Shown: piece after piece, positions 6,006-34,622 of the stretch | Numbering within the stretch: the stretch's first letter is position 1 | Layout: every line of letters begins with the position of its first letter | Source of the DNA: Takakia lepidozioides | Taxonomy: Eukaryota; Plantae; Bryophyta | Direction: 5' to 3' | Assembly (NCBI GenBank): GCA_030704615.1 | Contig: CM060732.1 | Coordinates: 75,144,001-75,208,000, forward strand | DNA length: 64,000 nucleotides | Translations under genes and position numbers: made by a program | Notes under the pieces: model-generated | Told to the model about the DNA's origin: nothing | Databases searched by the model: none | Seen by the model: the letters and a program-made list of their open reading frames with translations, nothing else

Positions 6006-7323
6006 CTAGGCTTGAACCCAGTTATAGCACACTCCCTTTGCATCCTCGATGCACCCACGTTTGCAATACATGTCCATGAGTGTATTGTTCAGAATGACAT
6101 CTGGTACAATTCCAGCTTTGACAATGTCACCATGGAGCTCTTTCCCCTTTTCCAGGACTGCCAGGCTCACACACGCATTGCAAACTGGAACAAATGTGAT
6201 ATGGTCGGGCTTCACCCCTTCCCGCATCATTTGCTCATAGGTCTCCAAAGCCTCCATCCCGCGCCTCTGCTGTGCATATCCTGTAATCATCGCATTCCAC
6301 GACACCACATCTCTTTCAGCCATATTGTGAAACACTCCGCATCCTCAATGCACCCGCATTTGGCATACATGTCCACAAGGGTATTGTTCAGAATGACATC
6401 TGGTACAGTTCCAGATTTGACGATGTCACCATGGACCACTTTCCCCTTTTCCAGGGCTGCCAGGCTCGCACACGCACTGGAAACGCAAACAAATAAGATG
6501 TGGTTGGGCTTATATTCCTTCCAAAACTCTCCTCGTCTCTGTTATCTGTTTTTGGATTCCTTCCTGTTGCCAAATTGGCAGTAACATGCCAAAATCAATC
6601 GAAACCACCATAGATCCACCCACAAGCTAACTTGCAGAATTTAACATGAAAATTAGGGATGACTCTGATAAGAGAGAAAAACAGGCTGAAATGTTTTGAA
6701 GAAGGTGCCTTTGTCAGCAGTGCCTAATTTTATCAACTGAGCCGTGGCCGCTGCTGCTTCCAGATGACCATCTACCCATGCAGGTCTCTTGTAGCTATCG
6801 ATCCACAGGAAATCATCATGTAATCTTGTGCTTGAAATCCGGCCCTCTTGGATGAATCTGGACCCGCACTATATCCCTGCTCCGTCAACTATCCCTGCCT
6901 CTGCACAAATCCCTCGGCTTGCAGCTAGCGGCTCACAATGACGGCCTAGATTTGTTGTAGCAAACACCCCAACCGTACTCATACCACACAGGTTCCTATG
7001 CTGAATTGCTTCTGCTTCTCTCTGTAGTCAAACAAGCATTCACCTTGTTGCCTCGATTGTCCCACAATTGACTGGGGTCGGAAAACTATTCCTTCCAAAG
7101 CTTCTCCTCGTCCGTGTTATCTGTCTTTGGATGCTTTCCTGTTGCCACATTGGCAGTAACATGTCAAAATCCATCCGAACCACCATAGATCCAGCCAATG
7201 GGCTAACTTGCAGAATTCAACATGAAAAAGTTGGGACGACTCTGATAAGAGGGTCAAACAGGTTGAAGTGGGCTGAAGAAGAAGGTGCCGCACCATTTTG
7301 TCCTTGGCCTTGTGTCATGGCAC
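6006..7323 (-). pseudogene. Decayed PDF-motif + PLS-PPR gene, inverted paralog of the 18.4-22.6 kb gene
   Basis: Same introns and exons as 19478-20080: GKHPKTDNTDEEKLWKE*FSDPSQLWDNRGNK | IHPRGPDFKHKIT(frameshift)DDFLWIDSYKRPAWVDGHL. A repeated intron/exon start is then joined at ~6512 to frameshifted L-S-P-L-S PPR motifs; no E/DYW domain. Confidence 0.85.
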
Positions 7324-8690: not shown

Positions 8691-10580
8691 CTACCGCCGA
8701 TACCTGTATCTCTTGAAATTGAAGTAGACATGCAGAATCCCCCGCTCAAACGTGCACTTGAATCCTTTCTTGTGAGAGTACTCCCACTCCTTGTTCACAA
8801 TCCGAAACGCAATATCCTCATAAGGCGGACCAGCATGAAAGCGAATGAGGCAGGTTTCCCCCTCGCTGCCATCCCTCTCAATGAAGTAGGTGGGCGCCTT
8901 GGTCTTATCCACCAGATCGGGATAGAAGATGTTGAACTTGTACCCCTGCACGATCTTCGGGGGTGGATTGTCGTGGTCGTAGTGGGTCTGATTATACTTG
9001 TTCCATTCATACCCTGTGTGCACCCGGTTGAAATACTTGGGCTTCCGGGGCCTGTATTTGTCGTGCCACCAATACACCTGCGACTCAAGGTTAACCTCCG
9101 ACCCTGGACCAAGCATAGTATCGCCGTCCTCCATGCCGCCCATGGATTTCATCATGGAAGCACGCTCCAGAGGTGTAAGCTCCAGAGGGTCCTCTTCGGC
9201 GACGGCGGGTCTGGCAGCTGCCTCCTGCAACCTGCGTTGCTGCTCATCCAGCACCTCCGCCCTCTTCCTCTCCAAATCTGCTTTGTCTGCTTCAGGATCC
9301 AACACCTCCAAGCCATCGACCTCGTGCGTTGGCTCTGGAGAGTAGTTGCCCGCATCCTCTTCGTCTTCTGTCTGCGTTTCATGCACAATTGGCTCTGGTG
9401 ACACTGCAACCTCAGGCTCCCAGTCACTTGAGGGCTTCCCCTCTGGCTGTTCGACATCGACATCAAGATCTTCACTGAGAGGCCGCTCCTCAAATCCATC
9501 AACGTATTCCATGCGTTTCAAGTGCTTTCGAAGGAGCTCAACGTGAATCTGTCTCAGCCGGGCCTTGGCTTTATAAATGTGAAGGCGCTTCAGAACTGCC
9601 TCCCAGTACTCCACCACTTGCGCTGTGCCTGTGAGCATCTTGGCCTCCGTTTGCTCCTGCAGATCATCCAGCTCCGCTACGCTCTGACCCTGCAACATGT
9701 GATCCACTTCATCATCCACTCCATGCAGGCCGAGGTCTTCTGTGAGAAGATCGTGAGGAGGTTCCTCCCCACGCAGCCTTGCCCTATCCAGCGCGACCCT
9801 CTTCCGAGTCTGCGCAATTTCCCAGTCGCAAACAACCATCATGAATTCCCAAAATTCAATATGAGTTTGCGTCGCCCGGTCCAACTCGAGGTGCATTTCG
9901 ATATCTTGACGCAGCTCCTCCATCTCCTTCAACGTCAAACCCTTGTAAATCTTATACGGCTCAGTAATATCGGGGTCAAAATCCTCAGACAAGTTCAAGT
10001 TCTTCGACAGCACATCAATAGGCTTCGCGCGGCCCTCCCGCAACCGTATGTCCGACCGCACCTTACTCTGCTCGAAGTGAAACTCTTCCTCCTTCTTCTG
10101 CCAGTCCTGATACTCCGCTCTCGCCCTCTCCCGCGCAAGCAACGCCATCTCCTCCTCATGCTGTGCCTTCTCAATTGCCCGCTCCTCCCTCCGCTTCTTC
10201 ACCTTCTCAATCTCCGCCATCCGCTCCCGCTGCCGCTTCTTCTCCGACTTCAAACTCATCTCCGACGGCGTCAACCCCTGCGTCAGGTCCCGCTCTATCT
10301 TCTTCCGCCACACAAACCTCTCATTCAGGTTCGAATCGCCAAACGGATTGCTATCGTTCGAGTACCCCGCCACACTCGACGTCCTCAACCGCTTCGCAAC
10401 TTTCTGCGCCTTCTTCTGCGCTTTCCTGGCCGCGTACTCCCGCAGCTCCTCCTCCGTAAACTTTGGAGGCTCACTCCTCTCCGAATCATCGCTCTCGGAG
10501 CCCCTCTCCGAATCGCTCTCCTTCCGCGTCCGCCTGTGACTCCTCTCCTTCCGCTTCTTCTGCTCCTTCCGATGCCCCAT
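8691..10580 (-). CDS. CACTIN: Cactin (spliceosome-associated factor), single-exon CDS of 629 aa
   Basis: GYSNDSNPFGDSNLNERFVW, IRLREGRAKPID and the C-terminal DKYRPRKPKYFNRVHTGYEWNKYNQTHYD...FNFKRYRYRR. First ATG at 10580. Confidence 0.95.
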   Translation of the reverse strand: MGHRKEQKKRKERSHRRTRKESDSERGSESDDSERSEPPKFTEEELREYAARKAQKKAQKVAKRLRTSSVAGYSNDSNPFGDSNLNERFVWRKKIERDLTQGLTPSEMSLKSEKKRQRERMAEIEKVKKRREERAIEKAQHEEEMALLARERARAEYQDWQKKEEEFHFEQSKVRSDIRLREGRAKPIDVLSKNLNLSEDFDPDITEPYKIYKGLTLKEMEELRQDIEMHLELDRATQTHIEFWEFMMVVCDWEIAQTRKRVALDRARLRGEEPPHDLLTEDLGLHGVDDEVDHMLQGQSVAELDDLQEQTEAKMLTGTAQVVEYWEAVLKRLHIYKAKARLRQIHVELLRKHLKRMEYVDGFEERPLSEDLDVDVEQPEGKPSSDWEPEVAVSPEPIVHETQTEDEEDAGNYSPEPTHEVDGLEVLDPEADKADLERKRAEVLDEQQRRLQEAAARPAVAEEDPLELTPLERASMMKSMGGMEDGDTMLGPGSEVNLESQVYWWHDKYRPRKPKYFNRVHTGYEWNKYNQTHYDHDNPPPKIVQGYKFNIFYPDLVDKTKAPTYFIERDGSEGETCLIRFHAGPPYEDIAFRIVNKEWEYSHKKGFKCTFERGILHVYFNFKRYRYRR

Positions 10581-10632
10581 GGGAATCCAAAAACTGCCAA
10601 ATATGCAAAGCAAAAACTCCAACCTCGCACTC

Positions 10633-10770
10633 AACCCTAAACCCTAAGTGACGAAACCAAAACCGACCATCGCAGCGTCGTCGGCAACGGCTGCAATGCG
10701 AAACAATGGTAGGAAAGCAAGCGGCCGCGAAGAAACAGAGCAATCGTGTGCAGCAAGCGACGAAACCCTA
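10633..10770. promoter_or_regulatory. Telo-box (AAACCCTA) motifs 5' of cactin
   Basis: AACCCTAAACCCTAA at 10633-10647 and AAACCCTA at 10763-10770. Telo-boxes are typical of plant translation and RNA-processing gene promoters. Confidence 0.5.
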
Positions 10771-15958: not shown

Positions 15959-17270
15959 CTAGAAGCTGCGGCCGTAGATGAGATTGAGCCTCTCGTAGAC
16001 GGATTGAGTTTCTCTGGAAGAAGAAGCTTGTGTCGACTTAGTGACAGGATGGGTAGTTATACCGCAGTGACTTTTGGGTATTGCAACTTGTATGCCTGCA
16101 TCATCTTGCATGCCCCTGCGTTTCTTCCGCAACGTTCCTCCCAACGTGAAGGTGAAATTAGGGCAAACTCCACTTCGACAAACGCAGCGAGGTTGACCCT
16201 TGGATTTGTTGTTCCAGTAAAGGAACCGGATCTTATCAGACAAACATTGGGGACACCTGTGGTCACCTGGGTAGTCTGCAAAAGCAATCTGGTTGGCTCC
16301 AGGATCTCTCTTTCTTTTTTTCGTTTCTTGATAAGAATTGGCCATATGCATCACGTTGGGATCCAATTCATGAAAAGTTCCGTCCGTGACCAATTGAAAA
16401 TTATCCATAAAATCTGTCTCGAAAAACTGGTCGTCATCGACCTCTGAGTGACCATTGGGAGCCAGAAATTTAATTTCTTGATCAGGATGGGCCATTACGT
16501 TGCACTCCAATTCTTGCAAAAGAGCTTCCGGTCGTTCAGGGGCTTGAGAGCAATTGGATTCTTTGTTTTGCCCCAACTCCAACTCCGATTCCGATGGATG
16601 CAGAAATACATCGAATTGTTCGAGGAGTCCATCTTCGTCCACCAACGGCAATTTATCCAGAAAGTCTGTCTCCAAAAACTGGTCGTCATCGACCTCTGAG
16701 TGACCATTGAGAGCTAGAAATTTTATTTCTTGATCAGGATGGGCCATTACGTTGCACTCCAATTCTTGCAAAAGAGCTTCCGGTCGTTCAGAGGCTTGAG
16801 AGCAATTGGATTCTTTGTTTTGCCCCACCTCCAACTCCGATTCCCATGGATGCAAGACATCGAATTGTTCCAGGAGTCCATCTTCGTCCACCAATGGCAA
16901 TTTATCCATAAAGTCTGTCTCCAAAAACTGGTCGTCATCGACCTCTGAGTGACCATTGAGAGCTAGAAATTTAATTTCTTCATCAGTATGGGCCATTACG
17001 TTGCACTCCAATCCTTGCAAAAGAACTTCCGGTCGTTCAGGGGCTTGAGAGCAATTGGATTCTTTGTTTTGCCCCAACTCCAACTCCGATTCCGATGGAT
17101 CCAGAAATACATCGAATTGTTCCAGAAGTCCATCTTCGTCCACCAAATCCCAAATCTGTCTCCAAAAGCTGGTCGTCACTAACCTCTGATTGAAAGATAT
17201 TAAAAGCCAGATTGTTCATTTCTTGATCAGGCTTAGCCATCACGATGCGCTCCAATTCCTGCAGAAGAGC
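15959..17270 (-). CDS. Atypical Dof zinc-finger protein with ~83-aa acidic tandem repeats (5' frameshift; may start at ATG 16996 or be a pseudogene)
   Basis: CPQCLSDKIRFLYWNNKSKGQPRCVCRSGVCPNFTFTLGGTLRK resembles the Dof consensus CPRC.S..TKFCYYNNY...QPR..C..C.RYWT.GG.LR. Basic clusters KKRKR and RKKRR flank it. Confidence 0.7.
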
Positions 17271-17285: not shown

Positions 17286-17489
17286 AGAAACTAGCCGAAA
17301 CTCGACAAGCTATGCAAATAAGCACGTCTAGATATGAAGAATTCTGAATGTTGCTGTAGCTAGCGTGCAGTGAGGCAAGCACCAGCGTACCACGCCCACT
17401 TCCCTGGACCATGAACTGACTCTCGCTCTCTCGCACACGTCTTCACAGCCCATGCACGCAGGGCACACTGTGGGCTCCAAGCTTCTCGG

Positions 17490-18245
17490 AGGGGGTTTAT
17501 CCTCTCTGGAGGCTGCTTCCTAGAAACTTCAAGGGAGATGGATGGATCATTCATTCATGGATGAATTATTGGCCCTGCCTTTTTTGGCCCTGCCTTACTA
17601 AGGGAGATGGATGGATCATTCATCCACTTGGATGAGTGAATGAAACAGTGTAAAGAACAGAATACCCCCTGTGATATACGTATGTACTATAGACGCCATA
17701 CCCGGCTGTAGGGATTCGGGAATGGCTCGCTACTTTCCTGCATTCTCATTGGTTGTCCACTCTCGAGTTACTTCCCGTTACCATCTACCTCGGTCCGTAG
17801 AAACTCCTCTTCATGGACAGATTATTCATAACCAGCTCTGTACATGGACAGAAATCATCCATAACCAACTCTGTACATGGATAGAGATCATCCATAACCA
17901 CCTTTGTACATGGATCCATTCATCCACATTAATCCAGATAGAATATCCATGTTTCATTCAGATTTCATCAACATTCCCAGATATCACAAATATTCATTCT
18001 TTGATAAACGGAAGAGTGCTTTTTAAATCGTTGTACATGGTGTACAATTTCTTTTTTCTTTTTTTCTTTTTTTCTTTTTTTCACAAATGTCACATTGGAA
18101 GATCAGTGCCTCACCGAGGGGGTTTATCCTCACTGGAGGTTGCTTCCTAGAAACTTCCACGGAGATGGAATGATCATTCATCCACTTGGATGAAACACGT
18201 GTAAAGAACAGAATACCCCCTGTGATATACGTATATACGCCATTA
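17490..18245. repeat. Direct repeat (~17490-17700 and ~18117-18245) enclosing a 33-bp x3 tandem (~17812-17915)
   Basis: GGGGGTTTATCCTC.CTGGAGG.TGCTTCCTAGAAACTTC...GTGTAAAGAACAGAATACCCCCTGTGATATACGTAT occurs twice; CATGGAcAGAnATcATcCATAACCAnCTcTGTA occurs three times. Confidence 0.85.
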
Positions 18246-18358: not shown

Positions 18359-20040
18359 ATGCGCAGACGACGGAGTGGGGTGCATAGGGTGGCTATGGCG
18401 TCTTCAGGGATTCCTTTCAAATTAGGTACTCGCTCCAAACACTTGACGCTTTCCTTTTCTGGGGTCGCTGCGTTCTGTTGTATGTATTCGCAGTCGGGAA
18501 TTGGCTTTTTTTTGGTCCAATTCAGCAGAAACGAGTGTACTATTGGCAAAGAGACAAGAAAGCGCACGAGATTGTTCGACAAGGCCGATAATTGGTATGT
18601 CTGGTGCGTAGGTCAACGCTGGAATATGGAGCAGCGCTGGCAGGAGTTCTTTAAAGATTCTTCACAATGGTGGGACGGTTGCCTGGACAAGGTGAGCTTT
18701 CTTCATGTAGGATGAGAAAGGGAGTTTGACGAAAGACTGGTATGATCGTGTTGCGTGGACTGGATTATACCCCGTTGTTGAGTGAAGTCTGAATCTCGCT
18801 TTGTTCTGGAAAAACTGCTTTTACCCTCCGTAAGTAGGATGCGCAAAGTTCTTTTCCCTGGACTTTGCAAGGTACTTGGGAGGGTTGAGACTGTGGCTGC
18901 TCAGCTGCTCCCTGGTGGTTTTCACAGACCACTCCAAAATCTCCAGACTACAGACATAAGCTGGTTTAGCATCTGTGTAAGTTTGGGCATGTCCCGATGG
19001 AGCCCAAAGTGACTTGCATGAATGTTGCTGAAAGAGCGCTAGCACTCCTCCAGAAGGGAATTTATCAAAATGTTGATGCTGTCGAATTTTCGGGCACAAG
19101 AATTCGGGCACAAAGGTCTACGAGCAGAGCTGGCACAAGTTTGTTAAAGATCCTTCTCAATGGTGGGACAAATGCAACTGCAAGGTGTGGCTTTCTTAAT
19201 GTACGATGTGAAGAAGTTAGTCCATCTTTCAATAGTGGGCTATTCCTGTTAATGTCATGGTTTGGTATATTTCCTGGTGTTTACAAGGCCCTTGGGAGGG
19301 TCAGCTTGGTCTTAGGAGACCAAGTTTAAATCTACGGCCAATCAGCTGCACTGTGGTGGTTCTCCTCACAGACCAGTCCGAGCTCACCTGACTACAGACA
19401 CAAGCAGCACACACAAGAGGCCCTTTTGGGGTGATCATCGGTTGTATCCTCCATGGTTGAAAGAAAAGCTAGATGCCATGACACAAGGTCAAGGACAAAG
19501 TGGTGAGGGCACCTTCTTCTTCAACACATTTCATCCTATTTTGCCCTCTTATGAAAGTTATCCCTAATTTTTCATGGTCTTTTATGCAAGTTAGCTCGTT
19601 GGGTGGATCTATGGTGGTTTGGATTGATTTTGACATGTTCCTGCCAATGTGACAACAGGAAAGCATGCAAAAACAAACAGAGAGGAGCAGAAGCTTTGGA
19701 AGGAATATTTTCTGACTCCAATCAATGGTGGGACAATCGAGGCGATAAGGTGAATGCCTGTTAGATTACAGAGAGAAGCATACACAATTCAGCATAGGAC
19801 GTAGTGTGTGAGGAGTAGGGTTGGGGTTTTTGCTAGAAAAAGTCTAGGCTGTCCTTGTCAGCCGCCAGCAGTGAGGCGAGGATGCATGCATGATTTGTGC
19901 AGAGGCACGGGTAGCTGAAGGAGCAGGGATAGAGTGTGGGTCCAGATTCATCCAAGAGGGCGGGATTTCAAGCACAAGATTACCTATGATTCCCTGTGGG
20001 TCAATACCTACAAGAAACCTGCATGGGTAGATGGTCAACT
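18359..20040 (+). other. 5' exons encoding an Arg/Ser-rich leader and three OSB-type PDF motifs (middle exons decayed)
   Basis: GT-AG bounded exons 18359-18425, 18612-18691 (WQEFFKDSSQWWDGCLDK), 18928-19184 (TTPKSPDYRHK...WHKFVKDPSQWWDKCNCK), 19372-19502 (TSPSSPDYRHK..EAL/W..PPWL), 19659-19749 (LWKEYF/SDSNQWWDNRGDK) and 19946 onward (IHPRGRDFKHKITYDSLWVNTYKKPAWV). Confidence 0.8.
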
Positions 20041-22573
20041 GGAAGCAGCAGCAGCAGGGGCACAGTTGATAAAATCAGGCACCTTGACCATGACCACAGC
20101 CACAGCTTGCGAAAGAGGGCCAACAGAGGTTGTCCACAGTGCCTCTTCTGGTACTTCTGGGCATGTGAGGATGCTATGTGAGGCAGGGCAACTGAAAGAG
20201 GCTCTTCAGACTCTAAACCAAGGAGGAATTACAGCAGATTCAGATACTTATGTCCGTCTCTTGCATAAGTGCATCAAGATGAAAGGCCTGGAAGCTGGAA
20301 AGCAGGTGCATGCTCACATTATCCAAAGTGGATTCAAGCCAAACATTTTCCTACACAACACCCTTCTCAACATGTATGTTAAGTGCGGGAGCATCCTGGA
20401 TGCTCACCAAGTGTTCAACAGGATGCCTCAACGATGTTTGATCACGTGGAATATAATGATGTCAGGATTTACCAAGCATGGGTGTGATAGGAATGCTTTG
20501 GAAACCTATGAGCAAATGATGCGGGAAGGGGTGAAGCCCAACCACATCACATTTGTTTGCGCTTCCAATGCGTGTGCAAGCCTGGCAGCCCTGGAAAAGG
20601 GGAAAGAGGTCCATGGTGACATCATCAAAGCTGGAATTGTACCAAATCTCATTCTGAACAATACCCTGGTGGACATGTATGCCAAATGTGGGTGCATTGA
20701 GGATGCAAAGGGGGTGTTCGAGAATATGGCTCAACGAAATGTGGTGTCGTGGAGCGCGATGATTGCAGGATATGCACAGCAGGGGCGCGGGATGGAGGCT
20801 TTGGAGACCTATGAGCAAATGGTGCGGGAAGGGGTGAAGCCCAACCACATCACGTTTGTTTGCGTTTGCAATGCATGTGCAAGCCTGGCAGCTCTGGAAA
20901 AGGGCAAAGAGGTCCATGGCGACATCATCAAAGCTGGAATTGTACCACATGTCAATCTGAACAATACCCTGGTGGACATGTATGCCAAATGTGGGTGCAT
21001 CAAGGACGCAAAGGGAGTGTTCGACAATATGGCTGAACGAGATGTGGTGTCGTGGAATACGATGATCGCGGGATATGCACATCAGGGGTGCGGGGTGGAG
21101 GCTTTGGAGACCTATGAGCAAATGATGCGGGAAGGGTTGAAGCCCAACCACATCACGTTTGTTTGTGTTTGCAATGCGTGTGCGAGCCTGGCAGCCCTGG
21201 AAAAGGGCAAAGTGGTCCATGGCGACATCCTCAAAGCTGGAATTGTACCACATATCATTCTGAACAATAGCCTGGTGGACATGTATGCCAAATGTGGGTG
21301 CATCGAGGATGCAAGGGGAGTGTTTGACAATATGGCTGCACGAAATGTGGTGTCGTGGACCACGTTGATCGCAGGATATGCACAGCAGGGGCGCGGGATG
21401 GAGGCTTTGGAGACCTATGAGCAAATGGTGCGGGAAGGGGTGAAGCCCAACTACGTCACGTTTGTTTGCGTTTGCAATGCGTGTGCGAGCCTGGCAGCCC
21501 TGGAAAAGGGCAAAGAGGTCCATGGTGACATCGTCAAAGCTGGAATCGTACCACATGTCATTCTGAACAATACCCTGGTGGACATGTATGCCAAATGTGG
21601 GTGCATCGAGGATGCAAAGGGAGTGTTCGACAATATGGCTGAACGGGATGTGGTATCATGGAGCGCAATGATTGCAGGATATGCCCAGCATGGTTGTCAT
21701 AGGGAGGTCCTGAAACTATTTGAGGGAATGCAAAAGGAAGGCTTAAAACCGGACAGTATAACATTCATCTGTGTTCTCTCCGTATGCAGCCATGTTGGCT
21801 TACTGTGTGAAGGAAGACGTTACTTCGATTCCCTGAGTCAAGATCATGGTGTCACTCCAACAGTAAAGCACTTTGGCTGCATGGTGGACCTTCTTGGACG
21901 TGCGGGGCAATTGGATGAGGCAGAGGAGCTTATCAATAAAATGCCAATGAAACCAGATGCTGTGGTGTGGAAGGCCTTGCTTGGTGCCTGCCGAATCCAT
22001 GGCAATGTGGAGATGGCTGAACGTGCGGCAACATCTATCCTCAAGTGGGATGAACAGGATGCTGCGACTTACGTTTTGCTATCAAACATCTATGCCACAG
22101 CTGGCAGGTGGGATGATAGTGCAAAGGTGAGAAAAATGATGGAGGTCAGAGGGGTTAGAAAGGAGCCAGGTCGCTGCTGCATTGAGGTTGGCAACAGGGT
22201 GCACACCTTTGTTGTAGATGACAAATTGCATCCCAAAATTAAGGAAATCCATGCTGAACTGAGAAGATTGTCTGGTCAGATGAAGGAGGCAGGGTATGTG
22301 CCTGACATGCGCTTTGTATTGCATGATGTGGGGGAGGAAGAAAAGGAATTTTCTCTTTGCCACCACAGTGAGAAGCTGGCCATTGCTTTTGGGCTGATCA
22401 GCACGGTCCCTAGGACGCCTCTCCGTCTCATCAAGAATCTTCGTGTGTGTGGTGACTGCCACACCTCTACCAAGTTCATCTCAAAGATCGTTGGCCGAGC
22501 AATTGTCGTACGGGACGCCAACCGCTTTCACCACTTTGAAGATGGGGTTTGTTCTTGTGAGGATTACTGGTGA
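19946..22573 (+). CDS. PLS-class PPR protein with E1/E2/DYW domain (organellar C-to-U RNA editing factor), large terminal exon
   Basis: LS-(PLS)x4-P2L2S2 = 17 PPR motifs, PG box (PGRCCIEV), intact Zn/catalytic motifs HSEKLA and CGDCH, terminal EDYW. First in-exon ATG at 20090. Confidence 0.95.
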   Translation: MHPRGRDFKHKITYDSLWVNTYKKPAWVDGQLEAAAAGAQLIKSGTLTMTTATACERGPTEVVHSASSGTSGHVRMLCEAGQLKEALQTLNQGGITADSDTYVRLLHKCIKMKGLEAGKQVHAHIIQSGFKPNIFLHNTLLNMYVKCGSILDAHQVFNRMPQRCLITWNIMMSGFTKHGCDRNALETYEQMMREGVKPNHITFVCASNACASLAALEKGKEVHGDIIKAGIVPNLILNNTLVDMYAKCGCIEDAKGVFENMAQRNVVSWSAMIAGYAQQGRGMEALETYEQMVREGVKPNHITFVCVCNACASLAALEKGKEVHGDIIKAGIVPHVNLNNTLVDMYAKCGCIKDAKGVFDNMAERDVVSWNTMIAGYAHQGCGVEALETYEQMMREGLKPNHITFVCVCNACASLAALEKGKVVHGDILKAGIVPHIILNNSLVDMYAKCGCIEDARGVFDNMAARNVVSWTTLIAGYAQQGRGMEALETYEQMVREGVKPNYVTFVCVCNACASLAALEKGKEVHGDIVKAGIVPHVILNNTLVDMYAKCGCIEDAKGVFDNMAERDVVSWSAMIAGYAQHGCHREVLKLFEGMQKEGLKPDSITFICVLSVCSHVGLLCEGRRYFDSLSQDHGVTPTVKHFGCMVDLLGRAGQLDEAEELINKMPMKPDAVVWKALLGACRIHGNVEMAERAATSILKWDEQDAATYVLLSNIYATAGRWDDSAKVRKMMEVRGVRKEPGRCCIEVGNRVHTFVVDDKLHPKIKEIHAELRRLSGQMKEAGYVPDMRFVLHDVGEEEKEFSLCHHSEKLAIAFGLISTVPRTPLRLIKNLRVCGDCHTSTKFISKIVGRAIVVRDANRFHHFEDGVCSCEDYW
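20487..21685 (+). repeat. About four near-identical 303-bp (101-aa) PLS triplet repeats
   Basis: GCTTTGGAGACCTATGAGCAAATG.TGCGGGAAGGG recurs every 303 bp. Confidence 0.95.
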
Positions 22574-30042: not shown

Positions 30043-33000
30043 ATGAAGCGCGCGAGGGACGAGACTGGGGCAGGGCCGCCGGGGAAGAGAGCAGCTGGAT
30101 CGGCAAGGGGAGAAACATCGGAGGCGGCACTGCAGGTTGCGTCAGGGCAGCGGCTCACAACTGATGATGCCTTGGCGTATCTGAAGGCAGTGAAGGACAA
30201 ATTTAAGGATGACAAGGAGAAGTATGATGAGTTTCTGGAAGTTATGAAAGACTTCAAGGCGCAGAGGATTGATACTGCGGGGGTGATCACAAGAGTGAAG
30301 GAGCTGTTCAAGGGGCACCGTGCGCTCATACTTGGTTTCAACACCTTCTTACCGAAGGGGTATGAAATCACCTTGCCTCTGGAGGAGGACAAGAAACAGC
30401 CAGTGGAGTTTGACCAGGCAATCAACTATGTGAACAAGATCAAGGCGCGGTTTCAGACTGATGAGCAGGTTTACAAGGCCTTTCTGGAGATCCTCAACAT
30501 GTATCGCAAAGGGAACAAGTCTATAAGTGAAGTGTACCAGGAGGTGGCCTCTCTCTTTCAAAATCATGCAGATCTGCTGGAAGAGTTCACCTACTTTCTC
30601 CCCGACTCAACAGGCCCTCCTGTGTCGACTGTTACTCACCCTCCTTCCAGGCCGGTGAACCAGAATACACGGCGAGAGGAGAAAACCTTTGCAGGTCCAG
30701 CACGTCACCCTGGCGAGAAAATTGTGAGCAAGAGGGAGAAGGCTGCTGCTGCTGTGCATGGCGAACGTGCGGAGAGACCTGTCGAAAGAGAGGTTGAGCG
30801 GTCCTCGATTCGACCGGACAAGGATCGCAAGAAGGGGGACAAAGAAAGAGAGAAGAAGGATGATATGGAGAGTTTGGAACGGGACAGGGAGGAAGGTGGA
30901 CAAAGGGAGAAGGAAAAGGATTTGGACGCCATGCAGAGATTGCCTCACAAGCGAAAATCTGCTCGGCGGGCTGATGAACTTATTCGCAAGCAATCTCAGG
31001 CAGGTGAAGGTGTCGAAGGCTTCGCAGGGCAGGCGGCCGCACCTTCTTTGGAGGACAAAAAACTTGTAAAGAGTGGCACAAGCCTCCAGTATGCCTTTTT
31101 TGACAAGGTGAAATCAAGGTTGCGCAATCGGGATACTTATCAAGAATTTCTGAAGTGCCTCAACATTTTCAGCCAGGAAATCATCAGCCGCGTTGAGCTG
31201 CAAAGTCTGGTGAGCGACATTTTGGGAAAGCATGCGGACCTCATGGAAGGCTTCAATGAGTTCCTTTCGCACTGTGAGAACGTTGAGGGCTATTTGGCTG
31301 GGGTGTTCAGTGGCCGGAAGTTGGGAGATTTTGGTGAAGAAGCACCACTGAAGCCCAAGATTGAGAAAGACAAAGAAAGGGACAGGGACAGGGACAGGGA
31401 GAAGGATCGCGAAAAAGATAGGGAGAGGGATAGAGACCGTGAAAGAGACAGAGACAAAGAGAGGGAGAGAGACAAGATGGGCGCCCACCCTCCCAAGGAA
31501 GGCACTCATAAGGTTTCCATAATCCCCAGCAAGGACAAGTACATCAACAAGCCCATCTCGGAGCTTGATCTGTCCAACTGTGAGCGCTGTACTCCCAGCT
31601 ATCGACTACTGCCGAAGAATTATCCAAGGCCAGTATCCAGTCATCGCACAGCTTTGGCCAATGCAGTGCTGAATGACAGCTGGGTGTCAGTCACGTCGGG
31701 TAGTGAAGACTATTCCTTCAAGCACATGCGCAAGAATCAGTATGAGGAGAGCCTGTTTCGATGCGAAGATGACCGATTTGAACTTGACATGCTGCTGGAG
31801 TCAACCTCAGTCACTGCAAAGCTTGTGGGGGATTATGTGGACAAGATACCGGACTCGACTCTGAAGCAAGAGTCTCCATTTCGTGTGGACGAGTACCTTT
31901 CTGCCATAAACTTAAGGTGCATTGAGCGTATATATGGGGATCATGGACTCGACATTATTGATATACTAAGGAAGAATCCAGCCTCGGCAATGCCCGTGAT
32001 TTACAGCCGTCTCAGACAGAAGCAGGACGAATGGTCGAAATGTAGAACAGACATGAACAAGGTATGGGCTGAAGTGTATGCCAAAAACTACTACAAGGCC
32101 CTTGACCACCGCAGTTTCTACTTCAGACAGCAAGACAAGAAGAGCCTTAGTACAAAGGGTTTGTTGGCAGAAATTAAGGAGGTGAATGAAAAGAAAAGGA
32201 GGGAAGATGATACGATGCTTGCTATTGCAGCTGGGAACCGTCGACCATTGCTTCCAGACCTAAGGTTTGAGTATCTGGATGCTGCAATTCATGAAGATTT
32301 GTATCAGATCATCAAGTACTCATCTGAGGAAATTAGTACCACAACAGAGCAGTCTGAGAAGATAATGAGGATTTGGACAACTTTCTTAGAGCCCATGTTT
32401 GGGATACCACCTCGGCCTCACGGTGCGGAGGACATGGAGGAGGCTGCCAAGTTGAAGGCTTTAGAGCCGAGAGGGAGTGGCACGAGTGCCAGGGAAAGCG
32501 GTTCCAGTGAAGGTGTTGACAACACTCCCGATGCTGTAGGATCAGCTACTGACGTCAAGGCAGTGAACGCCTTAGCGATGGATGAGGTTGCAACAGCTAC
32601 CAGCAATTTTGATACAGACATTGCCGAAAGGACTGGGTTTGGAGAAACCTCTGTTACGAATGGGGAGGCTGTCTTTACAACAACCGGTGGGGATACCAAG
32701 CAGGGGGGATTAGAATCTACTCGCCTTGTCAGTGAGGGACCTCTAGGGGGAGACAAACTGCAGGTGTTGAGTGTACCAGATTCTCTCAAGCCATCTAGTG
32801 AAAGCAAGACAGACAATAATGCAGTGATTGCCATCAGGTCTAGTATAGAAGAGGCTGGAGGTACCGGAGTTGTGGCCAGTGGAACGACAGTTGGAGGACC
32901 ATCCCAATTGTTCTTGCAAGAGTCTGGCCGCATTGGCACAGACATGGCCATCAGAAAGCAACTGAACATTGCGGCAGAGACACCTGAAGGTGATGGGAGG

Positions 33001-34622
33001 TCCAGTGGTGGTGTGGGTCAGAGCAAGCCTGTGGGGTTGAAGTTGGAGGAGACTGAGAGGAGTGGGGTCCTTGCTAGGGCAGAAAGGGAAGAAGGGGAGC
33101 TTTCGCCTTCCCCTGAGTTAGAGGACAGAAATAAGCTTGGTTTGATGAGTGGCATCAGAAAGTATGGACCTGGCCACATTTTGGAAGAGAATGGTGTGTT
33201 AAAGGAATTTGTGCAGGATGATGAGGATGTGGAAGGTGTTGGTGGAACAGAAGGGGAGCATGATGCTGATGCTGATGATGAAGGAGAGGAGAGTCCCCAA
33301 AAATCAAGTGAAGACAGCGACAATGCATCAGAAGCTGGGGAGGAAGTCTCTGGGAGTGAGTCTGGTGACGAGCAGTCAGAGCATGAGGAGGAGGAAGAGG
33401 AGGAGGAGGAGGATGAGCAGGAAGGCAAGGCCGAAAGTGAGGGCGAGGCAGAAGGCATGGCAGATGCTGATGACGGAGAAGGGGATGGCAACTCATCCCT
33501 GGCATCACCAGACCGTTCATTCTCTATGTGCAAGCCGCTGGCTGCGCATGCAGCTTCAGCTGATGCCTTGGTTGTTGCTCCTCACAACAGAAAAGACGGA
33601 AGGATTTTCTACGGTAATGATCTTTTCTATGTTCTTTTCAGGCTCCATCAGACCCTCTATGAGCGCATACTGTCTGCCAAGACAAATGCAATGACTGCAG
33701 AGCAGAAGTGGAAATCAATGAAGGACACTGTGGCGCCAAATCTTTATGTGCGATTCATGCAGGTTCTCTACAGCCTGCTTGATGGATCGGTGGATAATGC
33801 TAAGTTTGAGGATGAGTGTCGGGCAATCATTGGTACTCAGTCCTATGTGTTGTTCACACTGGACAAACTCATTTTTAAGCTGGTAAAACAACTGCAATCA
33901 GCTGCCTCTGATGACGTGGCAAACAAGCTCTTGGGTCTTCATTCATATGAGAAAGCAGGGGAGGCCGTTGACCTGGTCTACCATGCGAATGCATGTGTTC
34001 TTCTGCATGATGAGAACATATATCGGATGGAGCATAGATCAAATCCTAGTGAGTTGCTCATCCAGCTCATGGAGGGGGGACCTGAGAAGCTTGATGTTCC
34101 TGGCAATGCATTGGAGTTCTCTTTCCAGACTTATTTAGATGAATTTCTTCTTTCGGTTCCAACCATGAAGAGTCACCGCGTCTTTTTGGCGCGGAATAAG
34201 AAGAACAAATCTGCAGAGGAGGCTTATGCAGCAAACCAGAATGTGATGGTAAATGTGAGGGTTGTGAATGGTTTGGAGTACAAAATTTCCTGCCACACAT
34301 CGAAGGTCTCCTATGTGCTCGATACTGAGGATCTGTTCATGCGGTATGGGCGACGGCGTGTTCGAGCTGACCCTGTTGCCTTTGAGCGTAAGGAATGCCG
34401 ACGGCGTCACCTTTTTGGGGAATGGATTGACAAACGAACTAATGCTCACAATGACAGGTATGTTGTGTATCAGCCGGATCAGCCCTTATTGCAACCTAAA
34501 CCTGCCAATTTAAAACTGTTTGTTCTTTTTAGTTGCTATTGAGCAAAGGTTTCTGACGCAGTATGTCGTGGTTTTGATGCAGTGTATCACATTCAGATAC
34601 TTCCCACAATACAGTGGACTAG
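30043..34622 (+). CDS. SNL: SIN3-like (paired amphipathic helix) transcriptional corepressor
   Basis: Three PAH domains (DALAYLKAVKDKF; AINYVNKIKARF; FFDKVKSRL), HDAC-interaction domain (CTPSYRLLPK, NDSWVSVTSGSEDYSFKHMRKNQYEE) and Sin3 C-terminus (FYGND.FYVLFRLHQ). One exon 30043-34457, then a probable intron 34458-34582 and a short last exon. Confidence 0.95.

Follow-up and report, generated by a model that had tools for sequence, protein, structure and literature searches.

The window analysed here, that is, the whole stretch of DNA under study, comprises 64,000 nt of the forward strand of Takakia lepidozioides CM060732.1, and all coordinates below are positions in this window. Six exons on the + strand were placed by direct reading of the sequence, and their borders are all AG acceptors or GT donors. 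Exon 1 (18359-18425) contains the ATG start and a basic leader of 22 codons plus 1 nt (MRRRRSGVHRVAMASSGIPFKL), and it ends in phase 1 at the donor TAG/gtactc. The leader has seven basic, no acidic, and three Ser/Thr residues and is a putative organelle-targeting sequence. Exon 2 (18612-18691), which runs from phase 1 to phase 0, encodes the first half of a PDF module, designated module A (..NMEQRWQEFFKDSSQWWDGCLDK up to the splice junction; ..MEQRWQEFFKDSSQWWDGCLDK), and ends at the donor AAG/gtgagc. The following three exons are dead. Exon 3 (18928-19184) is a fused exon in which a linker connects the second half of module A with the first half of module B; exon 4 (19372-19502), nominally phase 0 to 1, contains the second half of module B and a linker (TSPSSPDYRHKQHTQEAL/WGDHRLYPPWLKEKL..); and exon 5 (19659-19749), nominally phase 1 to 0, holds a linker, then the first half of module C (..EEQKLWKEYF/xDSNQWWDNRGDK up to the junction), which is the sole first half that has kept WWDNR. 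Exon 6 (19946-22573) supplies the second half of module C (IHPRGRDFKHKITYDSLWVNTYKKPAW), a linker, an intact PLS-PPR tract, the E1/E2 motifs, and the DYW deaminase in 875 open codons. All the first halves end in WWDxxxxK, with the Lys five residues past WWD followed by gt, and each second half begins six residues ahead of (P/R)D(F/Y)(K/R)HK. Direct reading confirmed the positions of the six exons and of a phase-0 intron after the same Lys in every PDF motif, both of which had been given in a preliminary description of this DNA.

When exons 2-5 were varied between exons 1 and 6, the join 1-2-6 was the sole open one among the 16 combinations. This join (2772 nt) encodes a protein of 924 aa with a DYW end, in agreement with the open product proposed in the preliminary description; the other 15 combinations are closed. 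No second PDF-PPR gene was found within the window, and two PDF-like matches at 7056 and 43737 were rejected as chance matches without motif context.

Some other features of the window may be described here. Upstream of exon 1, a direct repeat (17455-17687 and 18082-18238; ~160-230 nt, 79-98% identity) brackets a stretch of ~550 nt. The bracketed stretch contains a 33-nt tandem repeat in three copies (17821-17919) and a T-rich tract, and may be a promoter-region insertion or a local duplication. On the minus strand, 15962-17179 is a 406-aa ORF with internal direct repeats of ~250 nt (acidic LVDEDGLLEQFDV units) and a C-terminal Dof-type zinc ribbon (PF02701, E = 1.2e-09). Two further genes are each a single uninterrupted ORF: Cactin (8694-10634, minus strand; 647 aa; Cactin_mid and CactinC, E = 1e-56 to 1e-63) and a SIN3-like co-repressor (30043-34539, plus strand; 1499 aa; PAH x3, Sin3_corepress, and Sin3a_C). 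Cactin and SIN3 genes in plants typically have many introns.

The translation of exon 6 matched the Pfam profiles PPR_2 (7.9e-91, 11 stretches), PPR (1.3e-81), E_motif (1.6e-20), Eplus (3e-06), and DYW_deaminase (5.9e-43), the last over profile positions 1-93 of 93, and HSE, CGDCH, and the terminal DYW are all kept. Its identity to lycophyte, conifer, and moss PPR-DYW proteins was 48-58%. The locus is assigned to the PDF-PPR-DYW family, the gene type being that of a predicted nuclear gene for an organellar C-to-U RNA-editing factor. Within the PPR tract, a P-L-S triplet repeat (20495-21690, plus strand) consists of 3.9 tandem copies of a 303-nt unit (101 aa) with 91% matches and no indels. Pairwise comparison of the triplets gave dN/dS values of 0.20-0.54 at dS values of 0.13-0.30, indicating selection after the triplet duplication. 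The reading frame for PPR-E-DYW is both intact and under constraint. At position 5 of the S motif, the triplets have S, N, or T. Four near-identical triplets are unusual for an editing factor and suggest recent growth of the array via in-frame duplication.

Among the best 120 PPR-DYW homologues, 33 carry an N-terminal PDF region, with one to three motifs each and a very tight consensus (W..FF.DPSQWWDNR..K..P..PDFKHK.T..LW....P.W, ~50 residues). They are mostly proteins of the lycophyte Diphasiastrum complanatum; the liverwort Calypogeia fissa and Sphagnum are also represented. The PDF region of one PPR fusion matched SSB-domain proteins, some of which are named OSB1, OSB2, or OSB3, with E values down to 1e-32. 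Gene structures were derived by mapping four annotated proteins onto their own genomic DNA. In the Diphasiastrum PDF-PPR gene (P0067/L001), each of the three modules is split in phase 0 after ..DK or ..IK, and the linker introns are in phase 1, as is the end of exon 1. The Calypogeia PDF-PPR-DYW gene (P0087/L002) has three exons: a leader with a phase-1 end, a first half ending in ..NRSEK, and a second half continuing into PPR-E-DYW. The motif of a Marchantia OSB (P0148/L003) is split between ..WWDNRFNK and KNPKAPDF and its linker intron is in phase 1, and in an Arachis OSB2 (P0126/L004) all three modules are split at the same place, again with phase-1 linker introns. Exons 2, 3, 5, and 6 of the window share this structure, with the phase-0 intron after Lys and the phase-1 linker intron. 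The idea of a modular split-motif cassette, which had been put forward for this locus, was therefore borne out and can be extended to all four of the PDF-module genes mapped.

On the basis of these gene structures, the phase-0 mid-motif intron is not a local feature but belongs to the PDF module itself in all the genes examined, whether from liverworts, a lycophyte, or a legume, and the 1-2-6 plan is the canonical single-module plan of the PDF-PPR-DYW family, as seen in Calypogeia. The conservation of the phase-0 and phase-1 introns means that the module units are frame-symmetric everywhere examined. In addition, the split exon structure is common to the OSB genes and the PPR fusions examined, which points to transfer of the module together with its introns. 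The PDF-PPR-DYW fusion is genuine and old, and public proteomes of seed-free plants contain it. In the Arachis hypogaea OSB2 gene (P0126; L004 3554-3890), the four extra residues of the middle module (RDGQ) lie directly at the mid-motif donor. The 'insertions at positions 19-30' described for the PDF motifs of Group III OSB proteins (PMC13393729) may sit at the mid-motif intron, as would be expected from sliding of the donor site.

An AlphaFold model of the Calypogeia module, built on a 25-sequence alignment (mean pLDDT 80.5), shows a helix, a strand (WWD), a loop, a strand (FKH), LW, and a helix. In this model, the mid-motif intron maps to the loop that connects the WWD strand with the FKH strand. 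The fold search with the PDF model gave no structural relative, the best hits being at E = 2.2 with Foldseek on PDB and Z = 2.9 with VIA-align wide.

The halves at the locus differ in how well they fit the family profile. Among the first halves, that of exon 2 scored best (44 bits vs 12 and 25), and among the second halves, scored without gaps, that of exon 6 was best (18 bits vs -50 and -29). The value of -29, which belongs to module B, is an underestimate because one residue is inserted in this half, which gap-free scoring does not accommodate. Exons 2 and 6 together keep 9 of the 10 invariant and 6 of the 8 near-invariant positions of alignment A1 (15/18; a statistical search would need longer sequences than these halves). 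The hybrid formed by their joining is without Arg27 (encoded in exon 2; invariant in the family), Pro20, and Pro36. It reads WWDGC and GRDF, as the preliminary description had claimed, that is, the invariant Arg and the Pro of PDF are gone. A search of a 5.8-billion protein set with the N-terminal 90 residues of exon 6 returned 124 candidates, none of them with E <= 0.001, because a half motif plus linker is too short.

The origin of the inner modules can be read from the DNA. The segment 18629-18961, which covers the first half of module A, the intron, and the start of the second half, is repeated at 19122-19405 as the module B equivalent, and the A/B repeat families D1, D3, D4, D7, and D8 show 77-87% identity at a spacing of 416-494 nt, intron blocks included. 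Modules A and B are a tandem duplication of DNA, ~450-490 nt in length with the intron included. Exon 3 is fused, without a linker intron of the kind found between exons 4 and 5, because the A/B duplication junction sits inside it. Both modules have WWDxC in place of WWDNR, and the loss of the invariant Arg therefore predates the A/B duplication. The dN/dS value between modules A and B was 0.36 for 32 chosen core codons, which are too few to separate relaxed from purifying selection.

Exons 3-5 contain four lesions in 479 nt. Two of these are in exon 3: a stop codon, TAG, at 18967-18969, and a 14-nt tandem duplication (19088-19101 and 19102-19115, family D6) that shifts the frame. Exon 3 measures 257 nt (mod 3 = 2), and the frames of its two halves differ; the 14-nt duplication accounts for this clash, since 257 - 14 = 243, which is exactly 81 codons. 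Exon 4 has an extra T in the T4 run at 19424-19427, after which the frame meets TGA at 19432, and exon 5 has lost a base in the T run at 19708-19711. The preliminary description had placed three lesions in the skippable exons, and all three are real, but the list was incomplete: the 14-nt duplication in exon 3 is a fourth. At the lesion rate of exons 3-5, ~1.2 lesions would be expected in exons 1-2 (147 nt), and none was observed; the probability of none (P ~0.3) is not significant. A clean stretch of 147 nt would thus arise by chance about three times in ten, and the lesion-free state of exons 1-2 is, by itself, no evidence of their use. In exon 6, ~22 lesions would be expected at the same rate, and none was observed, which is highly significant (P ~3e-10).

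We propose the following course of events for this locus. A tandem duplication of ~450-490 nt, including the first-half exon and the intron and reaching into the second-half exon, would have raised the number of modules to three (A, B, and C) and produced the fused exon 3, which would have been in frame at first, with 81 codons. The inner exons would then have decayed through the TAG, the 14-nt duplication, the extra T, and the missing base, while the outermost pair of halves, the A first half in exon 2 and the C second half in exon 6, would have stayed readable. Joining of exons 2 and 6 would restore the ancestral three-exon plan, namely, a leader, a first half, and a second half with PPR-E-DYW, and exons 3-5 would now be relics inside what is functionally one intron of 1,254 nt. 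We give about an even chance to this reading, in which a 924-aa editing factor with one chimeric PDF module is made from a 1-2-6 mRNA and exons 3-5 remain as relic pseudo-exons. The join 1-2-6 would then be the transcript in use; if the gene is alive, it is so via constitutive skipping of exons 3-5. Two features of its product count against the 1-2-6 model: the leader is 22 residues in length, compared with 61 and 119 residues in two relatives, and the hybrid motif has lost the invariant Arg (WWDGC) and the Pro of PDF.

The contig evidence bears on this reading and on its main competitor. The two runs X1 and X2 consist of contig sets only, and that they derive from RNA is a guess; 11,976 and 7,094 contig pieces, respectively, were placed on the window. 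The sets are dominated by paralogues at 90-95% identity, so that the depth is unusable. Joints between the first and second halves of paralogues were found from 19743 to 19944 (four substituted letters; 5 + 2 contigs), at the predicted site. The PDF-PPR family is expressed or retro-copied, with the mid-motif intron removed where predicted. The contigs also contained a variant paralogue joint that links 19743 with 19931, a position lying 13 nt before the main acceptor, and that may be an alternative 3' splice site in a paralogue or a mis-placement. One X1 contig with 1 mismatch covers 18998-19184 and stops at the exon-3 donor; if the contig run is RNA, the exon 3 region is transcribed. The joint 18691/19946 was not among the 15 listed of the 171 joints from the X1 and X2 contigs, whose RNA nature is uncertain.

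These contig results, with exon 3 covered and the skipping joint missing among those 15, are in favour of a different explanation, in which the 5' part of the gene is dead. The locus would then be a young pseudogene, or would give only non-productive, degraded transcripts, or its translation would start at an internal ATG (exon 6 residue 49, MTTATACERG..) and omit the leader and PDF. The four lesions within 479 nt and the repeat-bracketed stretch of ~550 nt just upstream of exon 1 fit such a state, as do the splice sites: the canonical sites of the dead exons look stronger than those of exon 6, with 12-13 pyrimidines in 18 positions at the acceptors of exons 3 and 4 versus 6 in 18 at that of exon 6. 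From the AG/GT sites and the richer acceptors of the dead exons, the sequence predicts inclusion followed by nonsense-mediated decay, not skipping. On the other hand, the 875-codon frame with all the DYW catalytic motifs intact would hardly have survived at the lesion rate of exons 3-5, as the P value given above indicates, and the dN/dS values of the internal repeats (0.2-0.54) reflect selection after their duplication. The internal start would, moreover, leave no obvious targeting peptide. We regard a dead 5' part as a possibility of appreciable weight that nevertheless falls short of probable.

Splicing itself might also determine the PDF modules. Because the units are frame-symmetric, splicing of a first-half donor to any later second-half acceptor keeps the frame and yields a hybrid motif, and such hybrids are structurally conceivable because the intron lies in the loop between strands in the AlphaFold model. 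Skips between half-exons could then be a general and used route to PDF number and to chimeras in OSB and PDF-PPR genes, one that here would keep an otherwise dead gene alive through the 924-aa hybrid; we consider this unlikely. More doubtful still is the idea, advanced in the preliminary description, that regulated alternative splicing of the frame-symmetric half-motif exons sets the PDF number. In its favour are the frame symmetry of the units and the conservation of the split in the genes examined, namely, one liverwort OSB, one legume OSB, and two PDF-PPR genes. However, all the inner-exon forms at the locus are broken and only one product is open, so that splicing has no choice of copy number and there is nothing to regulate; the copy number at the locus was changed by DNA duplication; and the one isoform pair noticed among the matches (P0171, 275 aa, vs P0198, 274 aa) differs by one residue. 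The claim that PDF copy number is set by splicing is accordingly not supported at this locus. In our reading, duplication of DNA and decay, and not a choice in splicing, determined how many PDF modules are present here.

Least probable, and very improbable in our estimation, is that the lesions are assembly errors in a gene with three intact PDF modules before PPR-DYW: two of the four are single-base changes in T4 runs (19424-19427 and 19708-11), and T homopolymer runs are a classic site of long-read errors, but the TAG reflects a base substitution, the 14-nt duplication is of another kind than a homopolymer error, divergence from the family profile is greatest in the inner halves, and the exon-4 T run is spanned at equal length by contigs of two independent runs. 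At this T run, two contigs of X1 and one of X2 extend across 19437, continue for at least 62 and 11 letters before they end, and show no change in length, which speaks against an assembly error there.

The preferred reading, with exons 3-5 as relics and 1-2-6 as the mRNA, can be compared with known systems. OSB proteins resemble the locus in having the same PDF motif of ~50 residues and the same phase-0 and phase-1 introns (Marchantia OSB and Arachis OSB2), and their PDF copy number is one to five (PMC13393729). In OSB proteins, an OB-fold/SSB domain lies ahead of the C-terminal PDF, whereas at the locus the PDF is at the N-terminus of PPR-E-DYW. No PF00436 match was found in exon 6, and exons 1-2 encode only the 22-aa leader and a half motif; with no OB-fold/SSB domain, the product of the locus is not an OSB. 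Furthermore, unlike an OSB motif, the usable motif here is a hybrid of two modules without the invariant Arg and the Pro of PDF. In AtOSB1, the PDF motif by itself binds ssDNA (PMC6963530), which makes an extra single-strand grip the most economical guess for the role of PDF in an editing factor, and the PDF module may add single-strand nucleic-acid binding beside the PPR tract.

The PLS-class PPR-E-DYW editing factors share with the locus the PLS repeats, E1/E2, and the DYW deaminase with HSE, CxDCH, and the terminal DYW. The locus differs from them in its PDF modules in small upstream exons, its PPR-DYW part in a single exon, and its four near-identical triplets. PDF-PPR(-DYW) genes of seed-free plants (Diphasiastrum complanatum, Calypogeia fissa, and Sphagnum spp.) have the same architecture and exon plan; the locus differs from them in its broken inner modules and in a leader that is far shorter. 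Diphasiastrum P0067 differs further: a phase-2 intron is added between its last module and its PPR array, and it has no DYW end. As a single gene, the locus is an eroded family member of uncertain activity. In the literature searched, no paper on the PDF-PPR-DYW combination was found; a single review mentions both PDF motifs and pentatricopeptide proteins but draws no connection between them, and a 2026 survey of OSB evolution contains no mention of PPR, introns, or splicing. As with exon-shuffling modules and pseudo-exons, the units at the locus are frame-symmetric tandem DNA units, with decayed copies lying between exons that still fit together. The unit boundary here, however, lies inside a folded mini-domain according to the AlphaFold model, so the loss of an inner unit gives a chimeric domain and not one domain fewer.

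The fusion places a module known for the binding of single-stranded organellar DNA in front of an RNA-editing enzyme. The split structure of the module offers a simple mechanism at the DNA level for the expansions of PDF copy number in OSB proteins, which have been reported without a mechanism (PMC13393729). The locus is also a natural case in which the loss of inner units leaves a chimeric module, and the tolerance of the PDF module to half-swaps thereby becomes testable.
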